This document shows positions 8,827 to 51,029 of a DNA stretch of 64,000 nt, piece by piece (positions within the stretch are counted from its first letter, which is position 1; each line of letters opens with the position of its first letter). The stretch comes from Phyllobates terribilis (Eukaryota). The stretch lies in assembly GCF_046119375.1 (NCBI RefSeq), contig NW_027362772.1, positions 252,712,001 through 252,776,000 of the forward strand. The letters are read 5' to 3'. A program made the position numbers and the translations under genes. Under the pieces are notes generated by a model. It made no database searches, had not been told where the DNA came from, and saw only the letters and a list, made by a program, of their open reading frames with translations.

Positions 8827-9249
8827 TGTTAGAACTCTCCTGTTAGGTTTTTTCTAGTTTGCTGGTCACATGACCATTTTTGCCTATTTAATCCGGCTCC
8901 GCCCTCCTGGCCTTGCTGGACTTCATTGTATTTACTACTCTTGAGCTAGCTTGGTGCTCTGTTACCGTTCTCTGATAGTTTTGCTAGGTCTTCGGACCTC
9001 TATGTTCTTTGTTGTGTGTTTGTCTTTGACTGCTACAATTTCTGCTAGGAGGTGTCCAACTTTATCCCAGTCCCTAGTTCTTGTAGGGATTCCTCCCTTG
9101 CATCTATAGGTCTTCGTACAGACTAGCCGAGGACTTTAGCGGGTCTGATTGCAGGATCAGGTTCCCCGTTACATCGTAGGGATCTAGTTTAGTTCGATTG
9201 TAGGGACAGATCTCCTGTCTTTCCTTAGTGCTTGTAGCAGATCATAACA

Positions 9250-9260
9250 GTAAGTCCAGC
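9250..9260 (+). promoter_or_regulatory. Self-priming-type PBS
   Basis: AAGTCCAGC (9252-60) is the reverse complement of GCTGGACTT (8915-23), which starts 30 nt after TATTTAA (8885); no TGG tRNA-type PBS. Confidence 0.75.
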
Positions 9261-9302
9261 CCAAAAAAAAATTTCTCTAAGGAAAGACCTCCAGTTTCCA
9301 TC

Positions 9303-12300
9303 ATGGTCTCGGTTCAAGATTTGGCTTAACGCTTGCAGGGACTCTCTCTGGAGGTGGCCGAGCTCCAACAACACGTGAGTAGCTGTTCTGGAGCACATTT
9401 GGTAGAGCCAAAGGTACGTCTGCCTGATCTATTTTTTGGTGAACAACAAGATTTTTTTTCTTTTAAAAATGCTTGTTTATTGTATTTTCGTTTAAGACCC
9501 GGATCATCTGGTGATGAATCACAGCGCATAGGGTTCATAATGTTACTTTTGCGCAAGGATCCTCAGGGATGGGCTTTTTCTCTCCAACCTAGTGATCCGT
9601 GCTTTAGATCAGTGGATAGTTTTTTTTCTGCTTTGGGTTTGTTGTACGATGATCCTGATCGTGTCTCATCTGCTGAGTCTGAATTGAGACGTTTGAGGCA
9701 GGGATCAGGTAATGTGGAAAAGTATTGTTCTCACTTCCGTCGGTGGTCTGCCCAGGTGGGGTGGAACAATTCAGCTTTGAAAAGTTTGTTTCTGGCGGGG
9801 CTAGGTGAAAGGGTTAAAGATTTGCTGACTGCTTATCCCACACCCGGAAACTTGCAGGAGGCTATGCAATTAGCTATACGGGTGGACAGGAGACTGCGTG
9901 CAAGGGTTAATGAGAGCAAATCCTCTGCTATGTCAGCTCCGAGTCTTGAGAGGGTCTGTGCTGACAAAGGAGAGCCGATGGAGATTGGGGCGATGACACC
10001 CCGCTCTCAGGAAAAAGACCGCAGGCTTTCTGAAGGTTTGTGCTTCTATTGCGGAAATTCTGGTCATTTTATTAAGAACTGTGTGCTTCGTATGAACAAA
10101 GAAAAAAAAATGGTCAGTTATGCCCGTATTGCCTGTTTAAATACAAAGGGAGTATTCCTATCTGCTACTACCACTGCTCAGGAAGAATTAATTGAATTTC
10201 GGGTATTTGTGGATTGTGGTTCTACTCTGAATGTGATTGATGGGGGATTCTTGGAAAAACTTACATTAAAACCTAAACCTTTGTCATCCCCTATTGCTGT
10301 GGTTTCTGTCGATGGCTCTCCCTTGAAGAGTGTTACTCACAAGGTCTGTGAATTTCCCCTCTCTGTTAATGGTATTCATCAAGAGAATTTGGATTTGGTA
10401 GTATTGAATAATTTGCCTTCTCCAGTAATATTGGGGTTGCCCTGGTTAAAATTGCATAATCCTGTACTGGATTGGTCTACCAATGAAATTAAGTCCTGGA
10501 GCCCTAAATGTTATGACAAGTGTTGTAACGGACGTATTGCTGCGGTGGAAAAAGGGGAATTACCTGTACCTATTCAGGATTTTTGGAGAGTTTTTTTCTG
10601 AGGAGGAGTCACAAATTTTGCCTCCCCATAGAGACTATGATTGTACCATTGAATTTGTCCCTGGAGCGACTCTTCCTAAAAGTCGTTTATTTAATCTTAC
10701 TATTCCTGAGAGAAAGGCTTTGGAGGAATACATACAGACAAGCTAGGCCGTCGGTCACATTAGGCCTTCCAAGTCTCCTGTGGCTGTTGGATTTTTTTTT
10801 GTTAAAAAAAAAAGATGGCGGTTTACGTCCTTGTCTGGACTTTCGTGAGATTAATAAAATTACTGTACGCAATCCTTACCCACTGCCATTGATTCCTGAT
10901 TTGTTTAACCAGTTAGTGGGGGCCAAGTGGTTCTCTAAAATTGATCTCCGGGGGGCATACAATTTGTTGCGCATGAAGGAGGGTGATGAATGGAAGACTG
11001 CTTTTAACACTCCTGTGGGTCATTTTGAGAATCTGGTTATGCCTTTTGGTCTTACCAATGCTCCAGCATTTTTTCAGAATCTTATTAATGACATCCTTAG
11101 ACCTTTGATCGGCAAAAATGTGGTTGTGTATTTGGATGACATTCTGATTTATTCGCCTGATCTGGAGTCTCATTGGCGGAGCGTACGTGAGGTATTACAG
11201 TTATTAATGGACAATTCGCTTTTTGCTAAGCTAGAGAAATGTGAGTTCGCTGTACAGAGAATTAGTTTTTTGGGTTACATTATCTCCAGTGAAGGTTTTG
11301 AGATGGACTCGGTTAAAGTTCAAGCTGTGCAGGAATGGCCTAGGCCTATTGGTTTGAAATCGATACAGAGGTTTTTGGGTTTCGCCAATTATTACAGAAA
11401 ATTCATAAAAAAAATTTCTATTATTGTCAAACCACTGACCGATCTCACCAGGAAAGGTGCTAATGCGGTTCAGTGGACTTCTGAGGCCATTGAAGCTTTT
11501 GTGTTTCTAAAGGAGAGGTTCACCTCTGCTCCCATCCTTATGCAGCCTGATGTGACTAAGCCGTTTTTGGTTGAGGTTGATGCTTCTTCGGTAGGGGTCG
11601 GTGCGGTGTTGTCTCAGGAAAGCAAGGATGGAGTACGTCCCTGTGCCTTTTTTTCAAAAAATATTTCTGAGACCAAGAGACTTGTGGGTCGCAGTTTTTG
11701 GTTGCCTGGATGGCAGAAGGAAGTCATTAAGTGGGTGCGTCAATGTACTGTGTGTGCTAGATCTAAGTCTTCGCATGCTCCTGCTGCGGGGTTGCTTTGC
11801 CCTCTGGAGGTTCCTAGTGCACCTTGGACACATCTGGCCATGGACTTTATTACTGACCTTCCCCCCTCTGAAGGTTTCACGGTCATCTGGGTGGTCGTGG
11901 ACCGTTTTAGCAAGATGTGTCACTTGGTTCCCTTCATCAAACTGCCTTGCGCTAAGACACTCGCTAAGGCCTTTGTCAAGGAAATTGTCAGACTACATGG
12001 CGTTCCTACTGACATTGTTTCTGATAGGGGACCTCAGTTCGTGGCTCGTTTTTGGCGTGCCTTTTGTGACAGGTTGGGAGTTCATTTGTCGTTTTCATCC
12101 GGATATCATCCTGAGTCTAATGGCCAGACAGAAAGAAAGAACCAGGATGTTGAGCAGTTCTTGCGTTGCTTTGTGGCAGACAATCAAGAGGGGTGGTCTG
12201 AGTTTCTGCCACTTGCTGAATTTGCTCTTAACAACCATACATCCTCTTCTGCTGGGTGTTCGCCTTTTTTTTGTTGTACTGGGAGACATCCGTCTTTTGG

Positions 12301-12892
12301 GTCATTCTCCAAATTGGTATCGACTGTGCCGGAGGAGGAGAGTTTTTGCGGTGATTTGGAGAGAGTTTGGACGGATGTGCGTGATAATCTTCAGGAGGCT
12401 AACAAAAAATCTAAGAGGTACTTTGATAGGAAACGGCAAGAGGTTTCGTTTGCTATTGGTGACATGGTTTGGTTGTCCTCTAAGAATCAGCGATTGAGGA
12501 TTCCTTTGAAAAAATTGGGTCCCAAGTTTGTAGGGCCCTTTAAGGTGCTTCAGATAGTTAACCAATCTGCTGTTAGGTTGGAGGTTCCTACCTCCTGGAA
12601 GATTAATCCGGTGTTTCATGTTTCTCTGTTGAAAAAAGCTGATGTGTCGGTTGGTGACGCCTCTGCCACTGTTCCTCCGGTGGTGGAGGACGGGGAATAT
12701 GAAATTTCCCGCATCCTAAATTCTAGACGGTATAGAGGGAGTTTGCAGTATCTCGTTGCTTGGAAGGGTTTCGGACCCGAGGATAACTCATGGGTGAGGG
12801 CGGATGATGTTTCTGCTTCCAGACTTGTCAGAGCATTTCACAGGAGGTTTCCTGATAAGCCCGGTCCTAGGGGATCCGGAGGATCCTCTTAG
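9303..12892 (+). pseudogene. gag-pol with chromodomain, disrupted
   Basis: CCHC knuckle CFYCGNSGHFIKNC; protease VDCGS; RT YLDD; integrase MDF/SDRG/ERKN; chromodomain YEISRIL...YLVAWKGFGPEDNSW; early stop at 9327, frameshifts at homopolymers, RNase H deletion. Confidence 0.93.
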
Positions 12893-13445
12893 AAGAGGGG
12901 GTACAGTTAGAACTATCCTGTTAGGTTTTTTGTAGTTTGCTGGTCACATGACCATTTTTGCCTATTTAATCCGGCTCCGCCCTCCTGGCCTTGCTGGACT
13001 TCATTGTATTTACTACTCTTGAGCTAGCTTGGTGCTCTGTTACCGTTCTCTGTTAGTTTTGCTAGGTCTTCGGACCTCTATGTTCTTTGTTGTGTGTTTG
13101 TCTTTGACTGCTACAATTTCTGCTAGGAGGTGTCCAACTTTATCCCAGTCCCTAGTTCTTGTAGGGATTCCTCCCTTGCATCTATAGGTCTTCGTACAGA
13201 CTAGCCGAGGACTTTAGCGGGTCTGATCGCAGGATCAGGTTCCCCGTTACATCGTAGGGATCTAGTTTAGTTCGATTGTAGGGACAGATCTCCTGTATTT
13301 CCTTAGTGCTTGTAGCAGATCATAACAGATATCAGTTGTGTCCGCCAGTACCAGCCTGTGTGTCTGTCGTGCCAGCCAGTACTTGCCAAGTCCGCCAAGA
13401 AAATATTGAGCGCTCTTTAGAAATGGACATGATTCACCATTCGGG

Positions 13446-16249: not shown

Positions 16250-16890
16250 GTCACTAGTCCAAACTGCCAATCAATCAAGAGCGTACAGCCCACGGCAAGC
16301 AGGAAACTCTTGAGGCTGGGGAACAGCATGCTCCTGAATATGGAAGACAAGATTGCCATTGGTCCAAATTGTCGAACAGTGATGAGCTCACAAAGCCTCG
16401 GCAAGCAAAAAACCTCTAAGGCTGGGGAGCAGCGCACTCCTGAATATGGAACACAACATTGCTACTGGTCCAAACTGTCGATCAGTGAGGAGCACACAGC
16501 TCCCTGGCAAGGGAAAAACCCTTGAGGCTGGGGATCTGCATGCTCCTGAATATGGAAGAAGAGATAATCACTGGTACAAACTATCAATCAATCAAGAGCA
16601 CACCGCTCCCCAGCAAAAAAGAAACCTTTGAGGCTGGGGAGCAGCACACTCCTGAACATGAAAGACAAGATAGCCACTGGTCCAAACTGTCAATCAGTGA
16701 GGTGCAAACAGCTCCCCAGCAAGCAAGAAATCCTTGAGGCTGGGGAGCTTGTGCTCCTGAATATGGAAGAAGAGATTACCACTGGAAGAGATTACCAAAC
16801 TGTCAATTAATCAGGAGCATACCGCTCCCTGGCAAGTAGGAAGCCAGGAGGCTAGAGAACCGCATGCTCTTTAATGTGGAAAATGAGATT
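16250..16890. repeat. Diverged minisatellite, 106-bp unit, about 6 copies
   Basis: CTCCTGAA(T/C)ATG at 16331, 16437, 16543, 16649, 16754. Confidence 0.9.
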
Positions 16891-17626: not shown

Positions 17627-20600
17627 TGTTAGAATCTATGTTGTTTTACTATCGGCCATCTTGTTGTGGTTTGCTGACTTCTAGTCTTTTCCTCTGGTGC
17701 TGGGTGTCTTGGTCATGTGATCTCTGCACTCTTTATTACTCAGCACCTGTCTCCCATTCCCCGCTGGACATCAGTGTTGTTACGCTCGTGCTCTGGCTAA
17801 GTTGCCTTGTTAAGTTCTTTGTGCTTTGGACAATTGATATCCTGGGACTTCTTGTTCCACCAGTTTTGTTCCCTTTAATCTTCGTTTCTGCAACTAACTT
17901 TTCTGTTAGGAGGTCTCCTGTTTTTGCTCCCAGTCCTTAGATCTTTTAGGGACCCCTTTCCCCTTCCTACAGGTCTTCATTTGAGTTCAGCGCAGGAGTT
18001 TCGGTGGGGCTATTCACAAGGAATAGGGCACCCACCCCAGCGTAAGGTTAAGATGAGTCTCAGTGCAGGGACAGCTTTTCCCTCCTATTCCTTGGTTCTA
18101 AGTTGCAGAACATAACAGTATGTCCAGCCCCGTTTAAAAAAAAATAAAATAGTTTTTTTTTTTTCTTTTTCTTCTCCTCTCCTCTTCCTGGATTTTCTTC
18201 AGTATGAGTAACATCCAGTAGCTTGCTCAACGCTTGCAAGGGTTGACTCTGGAGGTTGCTGGTCTTCAGCAGTACATGAGTAAATACCCTGCGGAACGCT
18301 ATGAAGAACCTAGAGTGTTGACAGGATTTTTTTTCATTTAAAAATGCTTGTTTGTTGTATTTTCAGCTCAGACCTAGATCTTCTGGGAGTGAACTACAGC
18401 GTGTAGGGATTATTATGTCTCTATTGCATAAGGAACCTCAAATCTGGGCGTTTTCCTTGTCTCCTGATGATCATTGTTTGAGGTCTGTGGAGGAATTTTT
18501 TGATGCCATGGGCTTGCTATATGATGATCCTGATCGGGTTACATCAGCTGAGGCAGAGCTCAGACTCTTGATGCTGAGAGTTATTGCACCCTGTTCAGAC
18601 GATGGTCTGCAGAGGTCAGGTGGAAAGACCCTGCACTCAAGTTTCAGTTTCTGGCAGGCTTGAGTGAAAGGATTAAAGATTTGCTCATTGCATTCCCTGC
18701 ACCTGATACTCTGCAAGTTGCCATGCAGTTAGCTATCCGTGTGGATAGAACGTTGAGGGCTAGACAGAATGAGGAGAAGTTTCCTGTATTGCTGGATTCT
18801 GTTTCTCACGATATTCCTGCCGACACTGGGGAACCTATGCAGTTGGGGGCAATGTCATCCCGTTCCAAGGAGAGGGACAGGAGGTTCTCTGAGGGACTTT
18901 GCTTGTATTGCAGTAAGGCTGATCATTTTCTAAAGCAATGTAAGATTCGCTTAAGGAAAGAAAAAAAAATGGTCAGTAGAAATAACACTCCCGTTCACAT
19001 TGCGTTTTTACGTTCTGCTGGGGTGTTTTTTCCTGGTAATACCACCTGTCAGGGTCGTTCGATTGAGTTTCAGGTTATGGTGGATTGTGATTCTGCACTT
19101 AATTTGATTGATCAACAATTTCTTGAAAAGTATAAGTTTGATTCTGAACCTTTGTTGTCTCCTTTTCCTATGGTGGCGATTGATAATACTCCCCTGGAGC
19201 ATGGGAGCATTCTTCAAAAGGTCAGTGGGTTTCCGCTTACTATGAATATGGAACATCAGGAGCAGATTGACTTATTTGTACTTGCTAAGTTGCCTTCCCC
19301 GGTCGTCCTGGGGTTGCCCTGGTTAAAAGTGCATAATCCTTTGCTAGACTGGTCGTCTGGTTCCATAAGATCCAGGGGTCAGGGGTGTTATGGTAAGTGT
19401 TGCAATGTTCACATTGCAGCTGTTGTGAAGGGGGAATTACCTGAACCCATTCAGGATTTTTGGAGGGTTTTTTCGGAGGTGGAGTCGAAAGCTTTACCAC
19501 CTCATAGAGATTACGATTGCGCTATTGACTTCGTCCCTGATGCTAAGCTCCCTAAGAGTCGGTCGTTTAATCTGACAATTCCCGAGAGGGAGGCTTTGAA
19601 GGAGTACTTTCAGACTAGTTTAGCTGCAGGTCACATAAGACCCTCTAAGTCTCCTGTGGCGGTTGGGTTCTTTTTTGTCAAAAAGAAGGATGGGGGTCTT
19701 AGGCCATGTCTGGATTTTTGGGAGATTAATAAAATCACTGTGCACAATCCTTACCCGTTACCACTTATTCCGGATTTGTTTAACCAATTGACCGGAGCTA
19801 AATGGTTTTCTAAGATTGACCTTCGTGGGGCATATAATTCGCTGCGGGTGAAGGATGGAGATGAATGGAAGACAGCTTTTAACACCCGGAAGGTCATTTT
19901 GAGTGTTTGGTGATGCCTTTTGGGCTTAATAACGCCCCCGCATTTTTTCAAAATTTCATCAATGACATTCTGAGACTCTTGATCGGTAGGAGTGTTATTG
20001 TTTATCTGGATGACATTTTGATTTATTCATTGGATCTTGAGTCTCATTGGCAGAGAGTCCGCGAAGTTCTTCAGATACTGAGAGATAACACACTCTTTGC
20101 TAAATTGGAGAAGTGTCAGTTTGCTGTTCAGAAAATTCGTTTTTTGGGTTACTTTGTCTCTTGTGATGGTTTTGAGATGGACCCGGTGAAAGTTCAGGCT
20201 GTGCTGGAGTGGCCGAGGCCTGAGGGTTTGAAGTCCGTACAGAGGATTTTGGGGTTTGCCAATTATTACAGGAAATTCATAAAAAATTTCTCTGTCATCG
20301 CTAAACCCATTACTGATCTCACCAAGAAGGGTACTAATACAGTCCAATGGTCCACTGAGGCTATTGAAGCTTTTGAGTATCTCAAGGAGAGGTTCAGCTC
20401 TGCTCCTGTTCTTATCCATTCGGATGAGACCAGGCCATTTTTGGTTGAGGTGGATGCCTCATCTATAGGCGTAGGGGCAGTTCTGTCCCAGGAGGGTGAG
20501 GATGGGTTGCATCCCTGTGCTTTCTTTTCAAAAAATTTTTCTGAGACAGAGCTCAACTATGATGTTGGGAATTGTGAGTTGTTGGCTATTAAACTTGCGT

Positions 20601-22711
20601 TCGAGCATTGGCGACATTTTTTCGAGGGGGCTTGACATCCTATACAGGTTTTCACTGATCATAAGAATTTGATTTATCTGGACACAGCTAAACGTTTGAA
20701 TGCCCGTCAGGCTAGGTGGGCAATGTTTTTTGCCCGGTTCAATTTTTCCGCAACCTTTGTCCCAGGGACAAAGAATGTTAAGGCTGACGCTTTGTCTCGT
20801 AGTTTCTCTCCAGCTGTGAATGCTGAGAGGGAGGAGTGTATTTTGCAGAGAGGGGTGGTGGTGGCCGCATTGGATTCTGAGTTGGAGAATAGCATCCTAG
20901 GAGCTCAGAGTGCGGCACCAACTAACACTCCGTGTGGTAAATTGTTTGTGCCTAGAGCCTTGAGGAGAGCGTTGTTTGTTGAATGTCATGAGTCACGGTT
21001 GGCGGGTCACCCAGGGATTTCGGAAACTATTAAGTCTATCGGTCGGAGTTTCTGGTGGCCAGGGTGGCAAAGGGAAGTCATCAAGTGGGTGCGTCAGTGT
21101 TCTGTGTGCGCTAGGTTGAAGGCCTCTCACGCTCCGGCTGCAGGGTTGCTATGGCCCTTGGAAGTTCCTAGTTCGCCATGGACGTACCTTGCCATGGATT
21201 TTATCACCGATCTGCCTTTATCGGAGGGTTTTTCTGTCATCTGGGTTGTTGTGGACCGGTTTAGTAAAATGTGTCATCTGGTTCCATTCAACAAGTTACC
21301 TTGCGCCAAGACTCTTGCTAAGGCTTTTGTGAAGGAGATTGTCAGGCTCCATGGTGTTCCCATGGACATTGTTTCCGATAGAGGACCACAGTCTGTGACT
21401 CACTTTTGGCGTGCTTTTTGTGATAGATTGAAAATTCATTTGTCATTCTCGTCGGGGTATCATCCAGAGTCCAATGGACAGACTGAAAGGAAGAACCAGG
21501 ATGTCGAGTTTTTGAGATGTTTTGTGGCAGACAATCAGGAAATGTGGTCACAATTTCTACCACTTGCGGAGTTTGCCCTTAATAATCATACTTCTTCCTC
21601 GGCTGGTTGTTCTCCTTTTTTTGTTGTACTGGCAGGTATCCATCTTTTGGTCCATTTTCCAAAGTTGGGGCTGCTGTACCGGAGGAGGACACTTTTTCTG
21701 GTGATTTGGAGAGGGTTTGGACCAGTGTACGCCTGAACCTTAAAGAGGCTAACAGGAGATCAAAAAGGTATTTTGACAAAAAAAGAAAGGAGGCCTTGTT
21801 TGCTGTTGGGGATATGGTTTGGTTGTCCTCTAGGAATCTTCGTTTGAAAATTCCTTCTAAAAAACTGGGGCCTAAATTTGTGGGTCCTTTCAAAGTGGTT
21901 CAGATTGTCAACTCGGCAGCGGTGAGGTTGGGCATTCCCTTGTCCTGGAGGATTAATTCTGTGTTTCATGTGTCGTTACTTAAGAAGGCGGACACGCCTG
22001 ATAAGCAGGCGAAGCCTACTTTTCCTCCTGTTGATGAGGACGGTGAATTTGAGATTTCTCGCATTTTGGATTCCAGGTGGCATAGAGGAAGATTACAGTA
22101 TCTTATGTCCTGGAGAGGTTTTGGCCCCGAGGATAAATCCTGGGTGAAGGCCGAGGACGTCTTGGCCTCAAGTCTAATTAAGGCTTTTCACAGGAGATTT
22201 CCTGGTAAGGCTCGGCCTAGAGGATCCGGAGGATCCTCGTAAAAGGGGAGGTACTGTTAGAATCTATGTTCTTTTACTATCGGCCATCTTGTTGTGGTTT
22301 GCTGACTTCTAGTCTTTTCCTCTGGTGCTGGGTGTCTTGGTCACGTGATATCTGCACTCTTTATTACTCAGCACCTGTCTCCCATTCCCCGCTGGACATC
22401 AGTGTTGTTACGCTCATGCTCTGGCTAAGTTGCCTTGTTAAGTTCTTTGTGCTTTGGACAATTGATATCCTGGGACTTCTTGTTCCACCAGTTTTGTTCC
22501 CTTTAATCTTTGTTTCTGCAACTAACTTTTCTGTTAAGAGGTCTCCTGTTTTTGATCCCAGTCCTTAGATCTTTTAGGGACCCCTTTCCCCTTCCTACAG
22601 GTCTTTGTTTGAGTTCAGTGCAGGAGTTTCAGTGGGGCTATTCACACGGAATAGGGCACCCACCCCAGATTTTCCCTCCTATTCCTTAGTTCTAAGTTGC
22701 AGAACATAATG
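17627..22711 (+). mobile_element. Ty3/Gypsy chromovirus (Tf1/Sushi group), copy 2, distinct LTR family, full length but decayed
   Basis: LTRs 17627-18117 (491 bp) and 22255-22711 (457 bp, 34-bp deletion, terminal CA changed to TG); TSD GTACA (17622-26, 22712-16); PPT AAAAGGGGAGG 22241-51; PBS GTATGTCCAGC 18118-28. Confidence 0.96.
18204..22242 (+). pseudogene. gag-pol with RNase H, integrase and chromodomain, multiply disrupted
   Basis: CLYCSKADHFLKQC; VDCDS; YLDD; VEVDAS/ELLA/TDHKN; HHCC; MDF/SDRG; FEISRIL...YLMSWRGFGPEDKSW. Confidence 0.93.
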
Positions 22712-22769
22712 GTACAGGGCAGTCTCTCTCAGACTGCTTTGCTCTGCCTCCCACATTGAATGAGTGTAT

Positions 22770-25258
22770 TCTACCTGTCTGCTCCTGTACAGGGCCCTGC
22801 CTGACTCATTTCATCTACTGCCATCTACATCAATATAGCTTTGTGGTTTTATAACATTTTTAGCTGGTTTCTAGCAGAGCTAACTCTCCTGCACCCCTCC
22901 ACAACGGAGCTTGTAAGAAATAGGCAGTGTAGAGCAGAGCTGTGTTTGCTGCCTGTTGTTGACAGATCAGTGATTTGAAACTATAAATACTACTTTGTTG
23001 AAGCGTATGGTAGAAGTTAATCGTCTGCCATATGCATCAATGAAGTACCATTTGCAGTTTCACATTACTGATGTGTCATTTGCAGGCAACAAACACAGCT
23101 CAACTCTGCCTATTTATTACAAGCTCCATTCTGGAGGAGTGCAGGAGAGTCGAGCTCTGTTCGAAACCAGCTACCAATGATATAAAACCACACAGGCTGT
23201 TATTCTGATGTAGATGGTGTTATGATCTGCTACAGAGACTAAGGAAAGGCAGGAGATCTGTCCCTACAATAGAACTAAACTAGATCCCTACGATGTAACG
23301 GGAAACCTGATCCTGCGATCAGACCCGCTAAAGTCCTCGGCTAGTCTGAACGCAGACCTATAGATGTAGGGGAGGGATCCCTACAAGATCTAGGGACTGG
23401 GACAAGTTGGACACCTCCTAGCAGAAATAGTAGCAGTCAAAGACAAACACACAACAGAAAGCATAGAGGTCCGAAGACCTAGCAAAACTAACAGAGAACG
23501 GCAATAGAGCAACAAGCTAGCTCAACAGTAGTAAATACAAATGAAGTCCAGCAAAGCCAGGAGGGCGGAGCCGGATTAAATAGGCAAAATGGTCATGTGA
23601 CCAGCAAACTAAAAAAAAACTAACAGGAGAGTTGTAACAGTACCCCCTCTTCTAAGAGGATCCCTACAAGATCTAGGGACTGGGACAAGTTGGACACCTC
23701 CTAGCAGAAATAGTAGCAGTCAAAGACAAACACACAACAAAAAGCATAGAGGTCCGAAGACCTAGCAAAACTAACAGAGAACGGCAATAGAGCAACAAGC
23801 TAGCTCAACAGTAGTAAATACAAATGAAGTCCAGCAAAGCCAGGAGGGCAGAGCCGGATTAAATAGGCAAAATGGTCATGTGACCAGCAAACTAAAAAAA
23901 CCTAACAGGAGAGTTGTAACAGTATAAATCAAAATGTCATCCAAATACACCACCACATCTTTGCCGATTAAAGGTCTAAGGATATCATTAATAAGATTCT
24001 GAAAAAATGCTGGAGCATTGGTGAGACCAAAAGGCATAACCAGATTCTCAAAATGACCCACAGGAGTGTTAAAAGCAGTCTTCCATTCATCACCCTCCTT
24101 CATGCGCAATAAATTGTATGCCCCCCGGAGATCAATTTATTGCGCATGAAGGAGGGTGATGAATGGAAGACTGCTTTTAACACTCCTGTGGGTCATTTTG
24201 AGAATCTGGTTATGCCTTTTGGTCTCACCAATGCTCCAGCATTTTTTCAGAATCTTATTAATGATATCCTTAGACCTTTAATCGGCAAAGATGTGGTGGT
24301 GTATTTGGATGACATTTTGATTTATACTGTTACAACTCTCCTGTTAGGTTTTTTTTAGTTTGCTGGTCACATGACCATTTTGCCTATTTAATCCGGCTCC
24401 GCCCTCCTGGCTTTGCTGGACTTCATTTGTATTTACTACTGTTGAGCTAGCTTGTTGCTCTATTGCCGTTCTCTGTTAGTTTTGCTAGGTCTTCGGACCT
24501 CTATGCTTTTTGTTGTGTGTTTGTCTTTGACTGCTACTATTTCTGCTAGGAGGTGTCCAACTTGTCCCAGTCCCTAGATCTTGTAGGGATCCTCTTAGAA
24601 GAGGGGGTACTGTTACAACTCTCCTGTTAGTTTTTTTTTAGTTTGCTGGTCACATGACCATTTTGCCTATTTAATCTGGCTATCATCCTGAGTCTAATGG
24701 CCAGACAGAAAGGAAGAACAGTGTTGAGAAGTTCTTGCGTTGTTTTGTGGCAGACAATCAAGAGGGGCTGGACTTACTGTTATGATCTGCTACAGAGACT
24801 AAGGAAAGGCAGGAGATCTGTCCCTACAATAGAACTAAACTAGATCCCTACGATGTAACGGGGAACCTGATCCTGCGATCAGACCCGCTAAAGTCCTCGG
24901 CTAGTCTGAACGCAGACCTATAGATGTGGGGGAGGGATCCCTACACGATCTAGGGACTGGAACAAGTTGGACACCTCCCAGCAGAAATAGTAGCAGTCAA
25001 AGACAAACACACAACAAAAAGCATAGAGGTCCGAAGACCTAGCAAAACTAACAGAGAACGGCAATAGAGCAACAAGCTAGCTCAACAGTAGTAAATACAA
25101 ATGAAGTCCAGCAAAGCCAGGAGGGCGGAGCCGGATTAAATAGGCAAAATGGTCATGTGACCAGCAAACTAAAAAAAAACTAACAGGAGAGTTGTAACAG
25201 ATGGGAGAAGATAAAATCGGTCAGACGGGGTCCTGTGCAAGAGCAGAGAGTAGAAAGA
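22770..25258. mobile_element. Fold-back (palindromic) MITE-like element interrupted by the LTR element at 23218-25199
   Basis: 22811-22960 is the diverged reverse complement of 23082-23217, and 22770-22815 matches 25200-25258 after the insertion. Confidence 0.75.
23218..25199 (-). mobile_element. Non-autonomous chromovirus derivative with internal inverted duplication
   Basis: TG...CA ends; TSD GATGG (23213-17, 25200-04); 422-bp LTRs 24778-25199 (5') and 23218-23639 (3'); PBS 24765-77; PPT 23640-57; inverted arms 23570-24116 and 24133-24680. Confidence 0.93.
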
Positions 25259-26671
25259 GTGATAAAGTGAATTCTACACTTAGATTAGCTTGATGATAAA
25301 TCAGAGAGGCGGGAATAATTAGACAAATATATAAGAGGGAGGGTACTGCAGCACTGAAGAGAAGCAAGGTGCTGCTAGGAAATGTCGCTTTAGTAGTGTA
25401 AGAATTGGACTGCCCATTCTGCTATGTGACGCTGGATGCACAGAGGGGCAGATGGAGATGAAAAAAGATGCAAAGGTACAAGAAAGAAACTGGGGGCTTA
25501 GTCTGTATATTAACAATAAGTATGCAATTACTCTGCTCTGTGAAAAATAACGCGATTGTGGGAATAACCCTTTAAATTTAATTGTGTTCCATGTCATTAG
25601 TTCAACCTGAGTGTTGGTCTCAGACCATAAAAATTGTCAATTCCTGACATAGATGTAGGTGCAGTCTATATAGATTATAACTACAACTGTGAGAGGGTGG
25701 TCAGATCTCCAGCTTTATATTCATATCAGTGGTCACCTTGAAGGTGCTGTCCTTGGTGAACAATCCCTTTTTGTTAGATTGGTCCTTTAACTATAAACTG
25801 AACTTATGGTATATGTTTGCTTAGATCACCTGGGATCTGCGAAAGAGCCAGGCAACAAGTGGTAAGTTCTCCCACAGCACCTCCACAGGAGAGAAAGAGT
25901 ACTGCACAGAATTCATCAAAATTAATCTTTATAATAATTAGCTATTTGACACACAAAGGACAAATTTTAACTAATTGAATCTTGTGGTTTAGCCTAAATA
26001 TATGTAGTATTAGCTAAAAATTCAGTTCCTTCCTTATCTGGAAAATTCTTTAAGTGGGCTAAGGCTTGTTAGCACCAAACATGGTAAGGAGTGCTCAGTA
26101 TACCAATGTCTCATTACATTCTGAGGATGGACGAAAACCACAAAGGGTAATTAGTGAGTACACAAAACAATTATATTTCGTCAGGACGAATCTGAGCATT
26201 ATATCTGATCCTGCTTCAATGATTCTTTGTAATTTTTTTTTTTTATTACACCCCTGGCAGATTCTGTTTTATGTTATAATAATACCTAAGCTTCCAGACA
26301 GACAGACTAGATCTGTGGGTAATAATCATTATTATGTTATGTTTTTTAATATCAGAGAGAATAGAGAACCTAATCTTGGAATTATATTTTACTCCAAGGG
26401 GAACGCCTGGGAGAGCAAGAAGGAAATTAGTATGTAGGTGATATAATCATTGCAACACAAGATATCACAGTCAGTGGTGTAGTTCAAATATATAGGACCC
26501 CGAGGTGTCTTTTAACTATGGCTACCGCAGCTTGAGAAACAAACCTTGTCAAGAATCTTTATTATATATACTCAAGTCTCTGTACCTGGGTGCAGAATTT
26601 TTCCAATATTACTAGGGAGAAGAGTTATATGGTCTTTAAAAAGATCCTTAGATGATCTCCCATTCATTATC

Positions 26672-27270
26672 CACTACATGGCCAAAAGTTTGAGGAGCCC
26701 ACAACCTTATTAGTTAATTTGCCAGTTTAGCCCCAACCAAGTGCATAAAATCAGCATACGGTTCCTCAATCCTTTGGTTCTCAGAGGAGATAAGAAGCCT
26801 GACGATGTCTTTATCCTTTCCTTATTGAAATCACGAAGACGCTCAGCCAAGCCAAATGCTCATGTGCATTGTTGAGTCGGAAGAGATAGCGTTTGGCCAA
26901 ACCTGAATTTGCCTAACAGTTATCTAAAGTATATGGACATTTTATCGAATTATACATTAAAGTGGAAGCATTCATAAGTAACAACCCAGAAGCAGTTACG
27001 AAAACAAGATACACATGGCAAGTTAGGGTTATCTATCTATGGCTACGTCCACCACTACATAGTTCCAAGGTATGAATTGTCAGCAAAGGAATTGTTGGTC
27101 AGGAGCCCTCAGGATTATTTTGCCTAAGTAGATACATGCCAGCTCAATGTCATGGCTTGGCTTGGCTGGAGAGGTGTGAATCATTGGAGGGGAAAAACTA
27201 AACTCAAAACAGGAGAAGATCAACCTCATTCATGGATCTCCAGCTATAGTGATGGAGCTACATAGGGAAG
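26672..27270 (+). mobile_element. Possible highly decayed Tc1 remnant
   Basis: CACTACATGGCCAAAAGTTTG TIR-like start; GGCTGGAGAGGTGTGAA..CATTGGA resembles the W-LEW-K..HW transposase segment. Confidence 0.3.
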
Positions 27271-37285: not shown

Positions 37286-39641
37286 ATTCACGCTCCCATG
37301 CCACCTGGAACAACCCCAGTCCTGACCAGGGACACCCATTAATGGGCATAGTTTCTGTAAACCTCACCCTTTTCAGCCCATGACGCTGAAAATTTTCAGA
37401 GACTATTTGTTTTGGCTCACCTGCTGAAGTGGATGCTCCAAGCACAAGTTTTGTGTGGGAGCACAGGCCATGGGCGTCAGTACAGCAGACAGAGAAGGCA
37501 TGAATGAAACAGTTAGCAGTGGTCCTGGAGACCACAGGCAGACAGGAGACTGGGAAGTACTGGATGCCGCAGGCAGACAGGAGACTGGAAGGAAGGTAGC
37601 AGAGATCCTGGAGACCGCAGGCAGACAGGAGACTGGGAGACAGGTAGCAGAGGTACTGGAGGCCGCAGGCAGACAGGAGAATGGGAAGCCGGTAGCAGAG
37701 GTACTGGAGGCCGCAGAGAGACAGGAGAAAGGAAGCCAGTAGCAGAAGTACTGAAGGCTGCAGAGAGACAGGAGAAAGGAAGCCAGTAGCAGAAGTACTA
37801 GGGGCTGCAGAGAGACAGGAGACAGGGAACCTGGAAGCAGAGGTACGGGAGACCACAGAGAGACAGGAGACTGGGAAGCTGGTAGCAGAGGTACTGGAGG
37901 CTGCAGGCTGACAGGAAGCTGGGAAGCCGGTAGCAGAGGTACTGGAGGCCGCAGAGAGACAGGAGACAAGAAGCCAGTAGCAGAAGTACTGGAGGCTGCA
38001 GAGAGACAGGAGACAGGGAAGCTGGAAGCAGAGGTACTGGAGGCCGCAGAGAGACAGGAGACTGGGAAGCAGGTAGCAGAGGTACTGGAGGCCACAGGCA
38101 GACAGGAGACTTGGAGGCAGGTAGCAGAGGTACTGGAGGCCACAGAGAGACAGGAGACTAGGAAGGAGATAGCAGAGGTAATGGAGGCTGCAGAATGACA
38201 GGAAACAGGGAAGCAGGTAGCAGAGGTACTGGAGGCCACAGGCAGACAGGAGACTTGGAGGCAGGTAGCAGAGGTACTGGAGGCCACAGAGAGACAGGAG
38301 ACTAGGAAGGAGATAGCAGAGGTAATGGAGGCTGCAGAATGACAGGAAACAGGGAAGCAGGTAGCAGAGGTCCTGGAGGCTGAAGAGAGACAGGAGACTG
38401 GGAAGCAGATAGCAGAGGTACTGGAGGCTACAGAGAGACAAGAGACTGGGAAGCAGGTATCAGATGTACTGGAGGCCGCAGGCAAACAGGAGACTGGAAA
38501 ACAGCAGAGGTACTAAAGGCCGCAGGCAGACAGGAGACTGGGAAACAGTTAGCAGAGGTACTGGAGGCCGTAGGCAGACAGGAGACTGGGAGGCAGGTAG
38601 CAGAGGTATTGTAGGCCACCGTCAGACAGAAGACTGGAAAGCAGGTAGCAGAGGTACTGGAGGCTGCAGAGAGACAAGAGACTGGGAAGCAGGTAGTAGA
38701 AGTACTGGAGGCCGCAGGCAGACAGGACAGGAGACTGGGAAGCCAGTAGCAGAGGTACTGGAGGCCACAGGCAGACAGGAGACTGGGAAGCAGTTAGAAG
38801 AGGTACTGTAGGCTGCAGGCAGACAGGAGACTGGGAGGCAGGTAGCAGAGGTGCTGGAGGCCGCAGAGAGACAGGAGACTGGGAAGCAGGTAGTAGAAGT
38901 ACTGGAGGCAGCAGGCAGTCAGGAGACAGGGAAGCAGGTAGCAGAGGTACTGGAGGCCACAGAGAGACAGGAGACTGGGAAGCTGGTAGCAGAGGTACTG
39001 GAGACTGCAGGCAGATAGGAGACTGGGAAGCTGGTAGCAGAGGTACTGGAGACCGCAGGCAGACAGGAGACTGGGAAGCAGCTAGCAGAGGTACTGTCGG
39101 CCGCAGGCAGACAGGAGACTGGGAGGCAGGTAGCAGAGGTACTGGAGGCCGCAGAGAGACAGGAGACAGGGAAGCAGGTAGTAGAGGTACTGGAGACCAC
39201 AGAGACAGAGGAGACTTGGAAGCAGGTAGCAGAGGTACTGGAGACCACAGAGAGAGAGGAGACTGGGAAGCAGGTAGCAGAGGTACTGGAGACTGCAGGC
39301 AGATAGGAGACTGGGAAGCAGGTAGCAGAGGTACTGGAGACTGCAGGCAGATAGGAGACTGGGAAGCTGGTAACAGAGGTACTGGAGGCCGCAGGCAAGC
39401 ATGAGACTGGGAAGAAGGCAGCAGAGGTTGCGGAAGCCACAGACAGACAGGACTCAGGAACACTAAAAGTCTTAATACCAAGACACAGATGTGTGTCTTG
39501 GTAGGCCTTATACAGGCCTAGGTAGACGATCAGATGAGAGCACGCCAGGCCATCTGCAAAGCCCGACATGGAGCACAACAGAGTTCAGAGGACCAGGATG
39601 AGCAAAACCCGGTGTGGGGCAGGTGTGTAGTACTATTAACA
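37286..39641 (-). mobile_element. Solo-LTR-like element inflated by a minisatellite
   Basis: Minus strand starts TGTTAA at 39641; TATAAG at about 39510; left end TCACGCTCCC is LTR-like but imperfect; no TSD found. Confidence 0.4.
37510..39450. repeat. Minisatellite, 48-bp unit, about 40 copies
   Basis: Unit GAGGTACTGGAGGCCGCAGGCAGACAGGAGACTGGGAAGCAGGTAGCA; period 48 (38041 to 38089). Confidence 0.97.
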
Positions 39642-41909: not shown

Positions 41910-44900
41910 GGGTGGAGTGATGAAGTAACCGCGGGCAAGGCCGCGCATTGGTATCTATGATCTGGCCCAGCAAGATCCCCACACACAGACTCTATCTTGA
42001 TAACCGTATCTTTACTCGTATACATTTTTAACACAGCAAAGAAAAACAATAAATGACAACCGTAAATATGCACAGTAATAACGTGTACTGATAAGCTGAC
42101 CCTCACTGTCCCTACTCACACGTTACCAGTCCTTTACTCCAGAAGGATGTGTCCCCCGTCGCAGGCCTGTCTGTCTTTGCAGGAGGGCGTCCCAGACGGA
42201 AAAAAAACAGGAACAGCAGAATTCGCGGAAAGAAAGGAAGGAGTACTTCGGCCTCTCGCCAGAGGTCCCGCTTACAGTCTCTCTGATCCGGATAGAAGCT
42301 CTGGTGGGTCCCCTTATGTAGTCCACACTCCAGTAGCAGGGAGTGTAACAGCTGAATCCTTCAGCAGTGCAGCAGCTGGGGAAGGCACCGAGGATATGGT
42401 GTCAGATAGAAGAAATCACGTTGAGAGTCTCTCCTGCGCCACACACGAGGGCCTGCACACTGTCCTGGCTCTTTTCACAGACCACAGCAGACTCTTCGCG
42501 CGCTTTTTCCTGCTTCCCACTTTGGTCATGTGACTCTCTAGAGCGGGACACAGGAGGCTCAGTCTTTTTCTCTGTCATCACACCCTGCGCAGGTGCAACC
42601 TCTGGCCACAAGGTGGCAACATCATCCTGTGTAATCACTTCTGTAACAGGCTCTATATCAATTATCACAGAACAGCCAGAGCCGGCCAGCTCACTACAGT
42701 AGATCAGGAGACTCACTGAAGTAGGCTTAGAGAATCTCTGTAGTGATGAAGCAGAGTCCAGCAGAATTGTGTGTGTCAGGAGGCACACTGTATCAATATA
42801 GTAGAGCCCAGTGATGTAGCAGAACTGGATATATCAGCAGGCACACTGACTCAATGTAGCAGATCCAGCAATGTAGCAGAGTCCAGTGACGTAGTAGAGC
42901 TGGGTATGTCAAGAGGCACACTTTCGCAATATAGCAGAACCCAGCACAGGGAAGCTGTCCAGAGTAGCAGTGTGCTCGTCAACTACCTGAACACTCAGGT
43001 GATCTACAGTTGCCTGAGTCGACCTCAGTGGTGTTGTCTAGAAGAGAAAAATGAGACAGCCAGAGCAAAGGGAGAATAGAGAGCCTTACTTTGAAGCCAG
43101 GAAGGGCGAGTAATTGTATAGTTTACTCCTTTTATCTTATTTTTTTTTTCCATCGCTATGGCTCTAGCCTCCCATCCCTCTAGATTTCTTTGCAGGAGCT
43201 TCTAGTTTCGTTGCTCCAGTAATGGGTTATATTATGAATGAAGAATATATTTTTTTTAGATTTCATTATACAGCAGAACTACATGTATAATAATGATGTT
43301 TTATGCCACAATAAAGCCATAGAAGCGAGTGACAATGAAATGTTCTCACTTTCTATCCATGCTTTTCTCCTGCAGTCTGCAGATTAGCAGATTTGTGAGA
43401 AAAACCATGGGAAATATAATCAGCGAGAGCCTTTCATTTCTGTTAATGGCCATCCTTTATAATTACCTTCTAATTAGCCAGTCATTTGGGTGCCTCATCC
43501 CGTCACTTTCATATATTTTTCCCTTGCTTATAATAATACAGAGACCAAAGGATCAAGTCTAGTGGGAAATGCAGGAAGAGCAAAGAAATAATATATTCAC
43601 TCAAACATCTTTGTAAGTCATATGGTAACTTACAGTAGTGTATATACTGAGAACATGGAAAGTAAATCAACCTACACACCGGACAGTCCCTTCCAGGCTG
43701 GGACTGGCCCACAGGAGAACAGGGGAATCCTCCGGTGGGCTACCACAGTCTTATATAAGCAACACTTAACACTACATAAAGACAAAGGCAGCATCGTATC
43801 CATTTAAAAATCTACCCAGTTCATTGTTATATAAATTAGTGATTGAGGATAATGTCACATTTGCATGTAGCTGAAAAGTGGAGCCCAGAAGTTGGTTCTG
43901 GTGGGCTCTTGTTTTTTAGGGGGACGGCAGTGACCTGATTTGTAGTTATCCTGCATAGTATACCAACTATTTAATTTCTGCACATCATAAATGTTCAGGT
44001 AGAAATGATAGTCTCTAAATTGTAGCAGCTTCGGGCTATCTCCTTGATATCTTTAATTTCACCTTTGGAAGTCTATCATCCATGTAAGGTGAACTACTAC
44101 TACTGTCCAAACTTCCTCTTAAACTAACCACTACCCTAACCAATATGACGCGCCCCTGGGCCTTCTGTGTCATGCGGCATCGCGTGCACGGGGGCTTACC
44201 CGGAGCCGGATCAGATGGGGGTAGTAGTCTCGTGGCGGTGACCCGGTCCGTGCCCAGGGAGTCAAACTAAGTGGCGAGTCTATTAGCAGTAGATGTTGGA
44301 TGACTACGCCACCCGTTGAATGCAGCTTTGGAGCTGCTGCTGCAGGGCAGACCGCTGAGGCCGGTGGAAGGATGGTGCAGCGGGGATGGTATAACCCCCA
44401 ACGGGAGGGGTATGGCCTCAGGGCAGCCGACGTGGATGATGGAGGTAGCAGGAACCACTCAGAGACGATGCGTGTAGTTCAGGGTCTTTACTGGTGACAA
44501 AGATAGACCCTCCCGGAGTACTTGCTAGCGATCGGGGCCTGGTCAGTCCTTGAGCAGATGGGATCTCCCCTGGCCAGGCGGAGTTGTAGGCCTTCCCAGC
44601 TAACTGTACTCTTCTGGCTACCTTGCTAGAGGCGGGTAAAAGTAGCCCACGTCCCTGAGTGTACCGTGTGGTGCTCACCCGTATGGCCGGTGACTCGGGG
44701 CCTTCTAATGGCTTCCGCTCCACGATGGCGGTGCTGGTCCCACGCGTGTGACCTTGCCTTCGGGTTTCTGGGCCAGAGGACCTGCAATCCCCTGCCGGTC
44801 GGTTTCTGCTGCTGGGTAAGGATTAGTCCCCACAGCCTCGGACTCCGGGTCCGGTGATAACTTCTCAGTCAGGGCGAGCTCTGCAGCTGCCAGCCCCTGA

Positions 44901-45501
44901 CTCCTTGTAGCACTGCTCCCACAGAGCTCCTGTTGTTTCTTCCTATGCTGCTTCTCTTCTCTACTCTTGTTCTCTCTCTCAACCCTGCCTCAGCCCCAGG
45001 TTTATATAGGGGAAGTTCTTCCCCTCCCAGGACTGGGCAGGAGGTGTGGCATGCATAAGATCCCTGACCAAGAGACCTCCCACCTGCTCTCAGACATAAT
45101 ATTGCTATTATTGTGGAGACCAGACCCCTGGGGTGCCACATTCCCCCCTAGTGAAATTTAGTACTCCGGGACTAAACATATTTTACAAAAACATAACAGG
45201 GTATAACAACAACAATAAAATACAATAAGGAAACACATAAAGATGGTCACGGTGTGTCCGCAACCGGGTGCAGTCTTTGAAGAAAACAAAGGTGTCCATT
45301 TCACCAAAACAGGAGACGTAACCAGGTAGGGGTCTGTCCTGCCCCGAGTCCTTAACAGTCTTTAGTCCGTCCTGGGTTAGGCTCCAACTATACACAAAGG
45401 ATTACCGGTAAATCCACCAAAGACTCCTGTAAATAACTAGAAACACAAAATTATACACAAGCAACAATAACAGATAAACATTAATAAAATAACTTAAACA
45501 C

Positions 45502-48534: not shown

Positions 48535-48551
48535 CCCCTTGGCGTGTTTGG

Positions 48552-50644: not shown

Positions 50645-51010
50645 AGGCCGCGGCTCCGCAGTGGATCGTCAGGGTCGAGGACCTTCCGTCGCGCTCCTGT
50701 GACGTCGGCGTCTGCTGGGCTCCTTCCAGGACCTTACGCAACGTCCGGACGTGAGGCAGGGCTTCAGTTCTCGCGCGCCTTCGGAGTCCACGCCCCTCTT
50801 CTTCCCGCTCGGCGTCTTCAAGATGGCGTCCAACGGCGGGAAAACTCCATGGATGGCGGGAAGAAGGCAGAAGATGGCGCCGGATGGCGGGAAAACTTCG
50901 CGGATGGCGGGAAGAAGGCAAAAGATGGCGCCGGATGGCGGGAAACTTCACCACTGGTAAGTTTGAACAGTCTTTTTCAGGCACGCAGTACCCGGTGGTT
51001 GCGGGCACGA

Positions 51011-51029
51011 AATCCTGCCGACTACGCCA
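51011..51029 (-). promoter_or_regulatory. Primer-binding site complementary to tRNA-Ser 3' end
   Basis: Plus strand AATCCTGCCGACTACGCCA equals the last 19 nt of vertebrate tRNA-Ser(AGA/UGA) including CCA; 5 nt from the 5' LTR end. Confidence 0.92.

Follow-up and report, generated by a model that had tools for sequence, protein, structure and literature searches.

We report an LTR-bounded unit of about 2 kb at 23218-25199 of the 64-kb stretch analyzed here (the window), with its sense strand on the minus strand, whose interior is almost wholly a 548-bp inverted duplication flanking a 16-nt spacer. The unit is probably a genuine, dead-on-arrival defective copy of a frog Tf1/sushi chromovirus whose interior was scrambled during reverse transcription. 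Short overlaps at the internal junctions, a native 6-nt repeat at the point of fold-back, and a junction at the very end of the primer-binding site (PBS) point to aberrant reverse transcription followed by normal integration.

Results

The unit has the structural features that define an LTR retrotransposon, namely, direct LTRs, a target site duplication (TSD) of the family's length, a PBS beside the 5' LTR, and a polypurine tract (PPT) beside the 3' LTR. The 5' LTR (24778-25199, minus strand, 422 bp) carries TATTTAA at LTR position 58 and, at positions 88-96, the sequence GCTGGACTT, where transcription is predicted to start. It is followed by 13 retained nucleotides of the PBS region (24765-24777, minus strand), among them the 9-nt complement of LTR positions 88-96, AAGTCCAGC. 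At the other end, the PPT region (23640-23657, minus strand) lies immediately upstream, in the sense direction, of the 3' LTR (23218-23639, minus strand, 422 bp). Both direct LTRs have TG...CA ends and are identical at 416 of 422 positions (98.58%); the six differences are ordinary substitutions, with none at CpG and none in a homopolymer. GATGG flanks the unit on both sides (23213-23217 and 25200-25204). Its left copy is also the last 5 nt of an imperfect, MITE-like palindrome of 397 bp (22821-23217) that forms the left flank. Complete direct LTRs, an identical GATGG on both sides, and a left copy that is the natural end of the flanking palindrome support a genuine insertion.

Between the LTRs, parental pieces are arranged as a palindrome. 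The left arm (23569-24116, 548 bp) has as its outer end the first 71 nt (sense) of the 3' LTR. Next to the PPT region is an internal partial LTR in sense orientation (23658-23924, minus strand), comprising LTR positions 1-265 and the 3 nt usually found just before an LTR, and containing a TATA box and a predicted transcript start. Beyond it, similarity identifies a sense piece of the reverse transcriptase (RT) gene with the RT core motifs up to YLDD (23925-24138, minus strand). The 16-nt spacer, or loop (24117-24132), is native RT sequence within a native 6-nt inverted repeat. The right arm (24133-24681, 549 bp) holds the same pieces turned around: an inverted RT piece (24133-24325), which translates as an open RT fragment ending in YLDDILIY, a partial LTR (24326-24592), the PPT region (24593-24610), and LTR positions 1-71 (24611-24681). 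Between the right arm and the PBS region lies an integrase-derived piece from the C-terminal side of the integrase core, antisense to the element (24682-24764, plus strand). The arms differ by two mismatches and one 1-nt indel over 548 bp (99.64% identity), and a chance origin of an inverted repeat of this length and identity is impossible. A sequence-only reading had described a miniature element with LTRs, PBS, PPT, and 5-bp TSD around a hairpin interior, arms differing by about two substitutions and one indel, a 16-nt spacer, a YLDD-containing RT piece, and an antisense integrase piece; we located and aligned each of the pieces, and every feature was recovered where it had been placed.

Each of the two substitutions between the arms has turned a CpG into TpG, a pattern consistent with decay in a vertebrate genome that is methylated. 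Editing of the arms by ADAR was considered and rejected, as there is no A-to-G footprint and both substitutions are of the CpG type.

Fold-back chimeras with microhomology are a known artifact class, and a chimeric read or mis-join in the library or assembly might have made the palindrome. The three differences between the arms (two at CpG sites and one in the length of a T run) also belong to classes of systematic long-read error. Such a chimera, however, would mirror everything outward, the whole LTR and the flank included, whereas the right arm ends at LTR position 71 and is followed by the integrase piece, the PBS, a complete direct LTR, and a flank with the matching TSD. Moreover, none of the six LTR differences is of the CpG or homopolymer class. 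This asymmetry, together with the closure by a matching TSD, makes a simple fold-back in the assembly highly unlikely. Elsewhere in the window, two further palindromes (55731-56296 and 57796-58143) were considered as signs of a systematic fold-back artifact with 16-nt spacers and rejected; they are internal palindromes of a repeated ~154-bp unit, an unrelated foldback-type repeat.

The parent family is a Tf1/sushi-type chromovirus of an anuran, and its best protein match is from Phyllobates terribilis (88%). The closest relative in the window is a near-full-length chromovirus at 8827-13327 (plus strand; TSD GATAT), with LTRs 99% alike and one in-frame internal deletion of ~470 bp relative to its relatives. 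Its two open reading frames (ORFs) encode gag-PR and RT-RH-IN-SH3-chromodomain (domains RVT_1, RNase H, rve, SH3_Tf2-1, and Chromo), in agreement with the family assignment made from sequence. The close kinship proposed between the unit's LTRs and RT and this copy also held, at 92.5-93.1% nucleotide identity for the LTR and 96.4-96.7% for the RT piece; the integrase-derived piece is 89% identical. A diverged copy of the same group at 17627-22711 (plus strand; TSD GTACA) shows ~73-78% identity and has pol split over at least five ORFs. A TSD of 5 bp in both of these copies makes this length the family norm. The 112-kb P. terribilis locus reached via the best protein match holds two relatives, which are just 82-90% identical, so that the window would represent either a different subfamily or a different frog. 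An exact look-up of a 1010-amino-acid ORF belonging to another element returned no match.

Like the parent family, Tf1/sushi chromoviruses, a self-priming branch of Ty3/gypsy with members in fungi and vertebrates, carry a chromodomain and a Tf2-type SH3 domain, generate a 5-bp TSD, and have a PBS that complements the start of their own transcript, not a tRNA (PMC6317226). Unlike them, the hairpin unit lacks any complete gene: it contains the RT piece (twice) and the integrase piece only, and no chromodomain. By its nucleotide identity of 93-97%, it is a chromovirus derivative by descent, not a complete member. It resembles the nonautonomous TRIM and LARD elements in having LTRs, PBS, and PPT and no coding capacity; those are multicopy elements with a stable internal region, whereas the hairpin unit is known as a single copy with a palindrome of parental pieces as its interior.

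Self-priming has been reported for Tf1/Sushi elements of yeast and vertebrates (PMC6317226). The 9-nt complement between LTR and PBS, 30 nt past the TATA box, is present in all three family copies of the window, and the diverged copy at 17627-22711 carries a compensatory double change in it. In a shuffle test, an LTR/PBS match at that position was reproduced in only 8 of 20,000 trials. In silico, the site has the properties of a self-priming PBS, the transcript start being a predicted one.

We aligned the unit's RT pieces to the RT gene of the neighbor copy at 8827-13327. Collinearity of the left piece extends over the spacer and the first 6 nt of the right arm (23924-24138), and the right arm's own RT match begins at 24133; the turn thus uses the gene's preexisting 6-nt inverted repeat and 16-nt loop. 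As DNA, this fold-back center folds at -10.5 kcal/mol. All five internal junctions have short overlaps; those other than the fold-back show overlaps of ~2-8 nt between alignment ends, plus one imperfect overlap of ~20 nt. The PBS/integrase junction falls 13 nt past the LTR, which is just where the self-priming PBS ends and plus-strand strong-stop DNA stops. The native 6-nt repeat at the fold-back, the overlaps at five junctions, and the junction at the PBS end are new relative to the sequence-only reading. Furthermore, LTR site 21 sets both partial LTRs apart from both true LTRs and from the 71-nt U3 piece. As judged from this one site, the pattern suggests a pre-hairpin deletion derivative, or a second copackaged template, that predated the fold-back, and it would follow from a fold-back on a strand that was heterogeneous beforehand.

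These features can be accommodated in three steps. First, template switches at microhomologies, on one template or a copackaged pair, would yield a scrambled cDNA in which RT was joined to the LTR start, LTR position 265 to the PPT region, the integrase piece to U3, and the PBS to the integrase piece. Second, the growing strand would snap back at the native 6-nt inverted repeat of the RT gene, prime itself, and copy the 548 nt just made, so producing the inverted duplication. Third, because the product kept two proper LTR ends, the family's integrase would insert it and generate the usual 5-bp duplication. The polymerase would be the element's own reverse transcriptase, acting before integration.

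An unlikely alternative is rearrangement after integration. An ordinary deleted copy would have inserted; later, at the 6-nt inverted repeat, a stalled replication fork or a polymerase repairing a break would have changed strands (by fold-back, MMBIR, or FoSTeS), run backwards for 548 nt, and then switched a second time. Microhomology at every junction suits replication-based template switching as well as it does reverse transcription, and from sequence alone the work of a cellular polymerase is indistinguishable from that of a reverse transcriptase. Repair polymerases are described as capable of snap-back synthesis, a term that occurs in PMC9962433. The arms are also more alike than the LTRs (2/548 versus 6/422 differences), which could mean that the fold-back is younger than the insertion. 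The excess of LTR differences does not reach significance, though (Fisher P = 0.085), and equally low arm divergence would result from gene conversion between the neighboring arms of a palindrome. Against this alternative, the entire rearrangement is enclosed by intact LTRs, and one junction is the PBS end, which is a landmark in reverse transcription but has no such meaning for chromosomal replication. In addition, the integrase piece is inverted and ~89% identical to the same neighbor to which the RT piece is 96.5% identical; given this inversion and unequal divergence, postintegration rearrangement would require an extra donor copy. Aberrant reverse transcription has a cost of its own in that a single-event path needs four or five nonhomologous switches, many for one replication cycle; some of them may have been inherited from an earlier deleted progenitor.

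Two independent tail-to-tail insertions, nested or adjacent in antisense and later trimmed by recombination, could also create an inverted repeat, and an antisense self-nested LTR element has been seen in Arabidopsis and proposed as a hairpin source (PMC11624286). Here, however, the arms are 99.64% identical and have two idiosyncratic internal junctions in common, the 6-nt inverted repeat at the center is embedded in an unbroken RT sequence, and there is just one TSD pair and one complete LTR pair, with no second TSD pair inside the unit. We regard this origin as barely credible.

Further copies of the unit were sought in several ways. No second hairpin copy was found in the 64-kb window or in the 112-kb P. 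terribilis locus. Exact-protein look-ups of four ORFs across the unique junctions returned no match on record, and a homologue search with the 70-amino-acid arm ORF returned ordinary RT fragments only, at ≤77% identity, none with the junction tail. A metagenome pattern scan for the fold-back center found none; this negative is uninformative because the control scan found no instance of the family's own LTR/PBS boundary there either. Separately, an Rfam scan of 22000-27000 gave no match.

To RNA folding, the minus-strand RNA of 23480-24780 is one long stem with a minimum free energy of -1102.7 kcal/mol. The proposal that an LTR-to-LTR transcript would form ~550 bp of double-stranded RNA (dsRNA) over RT, PPT, and U3 is thereby borne out in silico, as a single stem. 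By motif scan, the 5' LTR and the two partial LTRs each have a TATA box and a predicted start, and the promoter-bearing partial LTR of the right arm faces the 5' LTR. A transcript begun in the 5' LTR would contain a perfect stem of ~548 bp, and the locus could in principle supply dsRNA together with antisense RT, U3, and IN sequence.

Discussion

As a side reaction, reverse transcriptases are documented to extend strands that have folded back and primed themselves (PMC6088434). In retroviral minus-strand self-priming, as in the origin proposed here, the 3' end of nascent cDNA folds back to pair with a short complementary stretch within the strand, and reverse transcriptase elongates it into an inverted copy. 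The products described there were dead ends made in vitro, with the fold at the TAR hairpin of strong-stop DNA, whereas the hairpin unit turned within the RT gene, gained both LTRs, and integrated. In the literature on LTR retrotransposons with an internal snap-back hairpin, we did not find a direct precedent.

The default expectation is that the hairpin is an incidental by-product, now decaying. Structurally, and only structurally, it is analogous to Mu killer (Muk) of maize, reportedly an inverted partial duplication of MuDR for which heritable silencing is said to have been proven genetically (Slotkin and coworkers, 2005, as cited in PMC11624286 and PMC9868043) and which reportedly works through plant siRNA and DNA-methylation pathways. 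Both are inverted duplications of part of an autonomous element that include its terminal (promoter) region and coding sequence, and for both a long hairpin RNA homologous to active copies is predicted. Mu killer, however, derives from a plant DNA transposon, whereas the hairpin unit is a frog LTR retroelement with the hairpin inside an intact LTR/TSD unit, putatively driven by its own LTR. Rearranged plant endogenous pararetroviruses are likewise integrated reverse-transcribing elements with small inverted rearrangements and are candidate hairpin sources against their relatives; unlike the hairpin unit, they have plant hosts and siRNA peaks mapped to their loci, and they are not LTR/TSD-bounded integrase products (PMC9868043). 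The hairpin RNA (hpRNA) and endo-siRNA loci of Drosophila and mouse oocytes resemble the unit in being long, short-looped inverted repeats that derive from a potential target. Those loci are defined by Dicer-dependent small RNAs, whereas the hairpin unit is known from its sequence and an in-silico fold, which places the inverted repeat and loop in one transcript only by prediction.

A functional trans-silencer, in which an LTR-driven hairpin or convergent LTR promoters would feed small RNAs against the matching chromovirus subfamily and so repress it, in the way Mu killer represses MuDR, seems improbable to us. The structure is suitable, with a 548-bp perfect stem in the predicted transcript and TATA boxes and predicted starts in place. 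Exact 21-mers match the neighbor copy at 8827-13327 (84 of 173 from the RT piece and 55 of 245 from the partial LTR), and in plants inverted duplications of transposons and endogenous pararetroviruses are precedents for hairpin siRNA sources (PMC11624286; PMC9868043). On the other side, the unit is a single locus decaying at CpG, with no recognizable poly(A) signal (no AATAAA-like motif was found in the LTR), and no 21-mer matches the diverged copy, so that its reach would be limited to one subfamily. In addition, endo-siRNAs from long dsRNA are minimal in surveyed vertebrates outside mouse oocytes; efficient endogenous RNA interference from long dsRNA has been documented mainly in those cells, where it needs a special, rodent-specific Dicer isoform (PMC13399003). 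For the antisense pieces, use by a piRNA-type pathway is no less plausible than use as siRNAs. More doubtful still is a vertebrate retroelement counterpart of Mu killer, that is, an LTR-driven hairpin and antisense unit born by reverse-transcription snap-back that would feed germline siRNAs or piRNAs against its own subfamily. Because LTRs, self-priming PBS, and PPT were kept, such a unit might perhaps spread as a self-limiting "poison" copy.

Taken on its sequence, the unit is one of a great many rearranged copies in a genome full of repeats. For this frog family, the self-priming PBS supported in silico by a compensatory change between two diverged copies adds a modest but solid point to what has been described. 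If the proposed origin is true, the unit would preserve, as a clean record from nature, a snap-back self-priming event of reverse transcriptase whose product went on to integrate, and it would illustrate one route by which retroelement families may spontaneously generate hairpin loci against themselves. Direct vertebrate examples of how silencing of a young LTR family sets in are scarce; if small RNAs are produced from this locus, it would bear on how giant, transposon-laden amphibian genomes begin to silence such a family.

Structure of the mini element

The mini element, a defective LTR retrotransposon with a hairpin interior, occupies positions 23218-25199 of the window and is read on the minus strand. 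A repeat search and self-BLAST of the region bore out the anatomy proposed by a sequence-only reading, including the near-identical arms and the 5-bp TSD. The 5′ LTR (24778-25199) and the 3′ LTR (23218-23639), both on the minus strand, are each 422 bp long with TG...CA ends, differ at 6 of 422 positions, and enclose 1138 bp; the TSD, GATGG, is found at both flanks (23213-23217 and 25200-25204). The left arm, 548 bp long, comprises 23640-24116 plus the last 71 nt of the left LTR and is separated by a 16-nt spacer (24117-24132) from the right arm (24133-24681), its inverted copy. The arms are 99.64% identical, with two substitutions and one 1-nt indel. Translation of the RT piece in the right arm gave an open RT fragment with a C-terminal YLDDILIY, and an integrase-derived piece (24682-24764) lies beyond the arm, antisense to the element. 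An Rfam scan of the region returned no match.

The mini element is closely related to the neighbor copy on the plus strand at 8827-13327, as had been claimed: the LTRs are 92.5 to 93.1% identical, the RT piece 96.4 to 96.7%, and the integrase piece 89%. The neighbor carries a gag-protease ORF of 422 amino acids and a 769-amino-acid ORF with RVT_1, RNase H, integrase zinc-binding and core, SH3_Tf2-1, and Chromo domains; this domain set identifies the family as a chromovirus, and the mini element descends from a Tf1/sushi-type member. The neighbor's two ORFs are long and its LTRs are 99% identical. A diverged copy at 17627-22711 is about 73 to 78% identical, and its pol is broken into at least five ORFs; it has a GTACA TSD and LTRs of unequal length that are 96.7% alike. 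The best protein match of the 769-amino-acid ORF was from Phyllobates terribilis (88%), followed by matches from Pristimantis, Ranitomeya, Xenopus, and Pseudophryne, all of them frogs, and then from many fishes (annotated as gypsy integrase-like); the host is accordingly an anuran. Two relatives of about 5 kb each, in the same orientation and 12 kb apart, lie in a 112-kb P. terribilis locus, L001 (74457-79441 and 86310-91295), and are 87 to 90% identical internally and 82 to 83% in the LTRs. A 96-kb gene model chaining RT pieces spans both of them. The neighbor copy falls about 470 bp short of these relatives, and Pfam covers its RNase H and integrase zinc-binding domains in part only, which points to one in-frame internal deletion; it is probably not autonomous either.

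The window holds several other repeats. Another LTR element, on the minus strand at 44146-52031, has LTRs that are 99% alike, a G+C content of about 53%, and no chromodomain; its coding regions are an RT-RNase H-integrase ORF of 1010 amino acids, a second ORF resembling a protease, and a gag in which PNMA-like and zinc-knuckle matches were found. A Tc1/mariner-type element (60016-61516) has a 352-amino-acid ORF with HTH_Tnp_Tc3_2 and DDE_3 matches and flanking inverted repeats of 208 nt, 97% alike. A large foldback-type repeat (54528-59440), unrelated to the chromovirus, is bounded by long inverted termini, which reach 1055 nt at 97% and consist of units of about 154 and 200 bp with small palindromes of their own; no protein domain was found in its sole ORF, of 116 amino acids. 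Tandem arrays comprise about four copies of a 106-bp unit, 77 to 79% alike (16294-16717), and a satellite with units of about 48 bp, pronounced GC and AT skew, and elevated G+C (37445-39400).

Cis signals and a putative self-priming PBS

In sense orientation, the LTR carries TATTTAA at position 58, and an AATAAA-like poly(A) signal was not found in it. The 9-nt sequence GCTGGACTT at LTR positions 88-96 of the mini element has its exact complement, AAGTCCAGC, 3 to 11 nt past the 5′ LTR. The neighbor copy has the identical pair; in the diverged copy, GCTGGACAT pairs with ATGTCCAGC, a compensatory double change, about 31 nt past a TATA-like motif. Only 8 of 20000 shuffled 20-mers had a 9-nt complement at the same TATA distance. 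With the transcript start predicted, this complementarity reads as the signature of a putative self-priming PBS, as reported in Tf1/Sushi elements of yeast and vertebrates (PMC6317226). The mini element retains just 13 nt of leader, so that any packaging signal downstream of the PBS has been lost. The proposal that all cis signals are present therefore holds for the LTRs, PBS, and PPT and may not extend to packaging.

Origin of the hairpin interior

In the BLAST hit table, the left RT piece is collinear with the neighbor's RT through the spacer and 6 nt of the right arm (23924-24138), and the right arm's match to the same gene starts at 24133. The turn thus lies on a 6-nt inverted repeat native to the gene, with a 16-nt loop, and the spacer is normal RT gene sequence, not foreign. 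As DNA, the fold-back center has a folding energy of −10.5 kcal/mol. In a snap-back, a 3′ end would have paired with a short complement a few bases back and then been extended along its own strand, and the inverted repeat and loop at the turn look like the trace expected of such an event. At the remaining junctions, alignment ends overlap by about 2 to 8 nt, with one imperfect overlap of about 20 nt; such overlaps, taken from the hit table and the element's own sequence, on which our microhomology argument is built, are typical of template switching. The RT-to-LTR and LTR-to-PPT-region junctions occur in both arms and must therefore predate the fold-back or lie upstream in it. The PBS/integrase-piece junction falls 13 nt past the LTR, where the self-priming PBS ends. 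The PBS end is the terminus of plus-strand strong-stop DNA and the start of second strand transfer, and the location of this junction is the best hint that the polymerase may have been the element's own reverse transcriptase. In vitro, reverse transcriptase has been documented to self-prime by folding back (PMC6088434). We consider a faulty round of reverse transcription that included a snap-back and was followed by integration the most likely origin.

An assembly fold-back derived from a chimeric read is an unlikely source of the palindrome. Such a read would be expected to mirror the entire left side, whereas the right arm stops at LTR position 71 and is followed in turn by the integrase piece, the PBS, a full-length LTR in direct orientation, and flanking DNA that bears the matching TSD. 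Moreover, a 397-bp palindromic repeat ends naturally with the left TSD copy: the insertion lies exactly at the right end of 22821-23217, whose last 5 nt form the TSD. (That repeat is an imperfect, MITE-like palindrome, 77.6% self-complementary.) What speaks for an artifact is that the arms differ at CpG and in a homopolymer, where long-read errors also cluster: both substitutions are CpG to TpG, and the indel lies within a T run.

Polarized by the neighbor's LTRs, the six LTR differences assign four changes to the 5′ LTR and the other two to the 3′ LTR; CpG sites account for none of them. Divergence between the LTRs (K = 0.014), at a vertebrate neutral rate of about 1 to 2 × 10^−9 per site per year, gives a rough insertion age of a few million years. 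The arms diverge less than the LTRs (2/548 versus 6/422), a difference that is not significant (Fisher P = 0.085); equal age, a younger fold-back, and gene conversion between the arms are all possible. A derived base at LTR site 21 is shared by the two true LTRs and by the 71-nt U3 piece (LTR positions 1-71), while the partial LTRs, the internal LTR pieces found one per arm, have the ancestral base. The strand that folded back thus already held two slightly different LTR versions, which would imply either a deletion derivative at least one generation older or the copying of two different templates.

Potential for double-stranded RNA and silencing

The predicted LTR-to-LTR transcript includes the entire stem, and the minus-strand RNA of 23480-24780 is predicted to fold into one stem about 548 bp in length (MFE, −1102.7 kcal/mol), in silico agreement with the roughly 550 bp of dsRNA anticipated from an LTR-driven transcript. 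Each partial LTR (positions 1-265) has a TATA box and a predicted start, and that of the right arm is directed toward the 5′ LTR, so that the promoters are predicted to be convergent. Of the 21-mers, 84 of 173 from the RT piece and 55 of 245 from the partial LTR match the neighbor copy exactly, and none from either piece match the diverged copy; any small RNAs would thus be subfamily specific.

In plants, hairpins formed by rearranged transposons or by endogenous pararetroviruses count as accepted or suggested triggers of silencing (PMC11624286; PMC9868043). Among vertebrates, mouse oocytes are a documented case of strong endogenous RNAi from long dsRNA, which there relies on a truncated Dicer isoform, and endo-siRNA levels are minimal elsewhere (PMC13399003). 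For the frog germline, it would be at least as plausible that the antisense RT, U3, and integrase pieces serve a piRNA-type pathway as that they give siRNA. We consider a silencer role for the mini element possible but unlikely; its likeness to Mu killer is one of structure only, as a hairpin locus.

Our limited literature search found no LTR retrotransposon that, within intact LTRs and a TSD, carries an internal palindrome of the snap-back kind. Exact lookups of four ORFs crossing the element's junctions gave no match, and a homologue search with the arm ORF found no further copy of the hairpin form; a metagenome pattern scan for the fold-back center was also without a match, and the family control pattern was equally absent, so that this negative carries no weight. 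Structurally the mini element belongs with the non-autonomous LTR elements, but only one copy of it is known, and we rate it as a rearranged defective LTR copy and a potential hpRNA locus. The 548-bp stem would be a severe obstacle to RNA packaging and copying, and the hairpin form is therefore more likely to be a dead end than a lineage that spreads.
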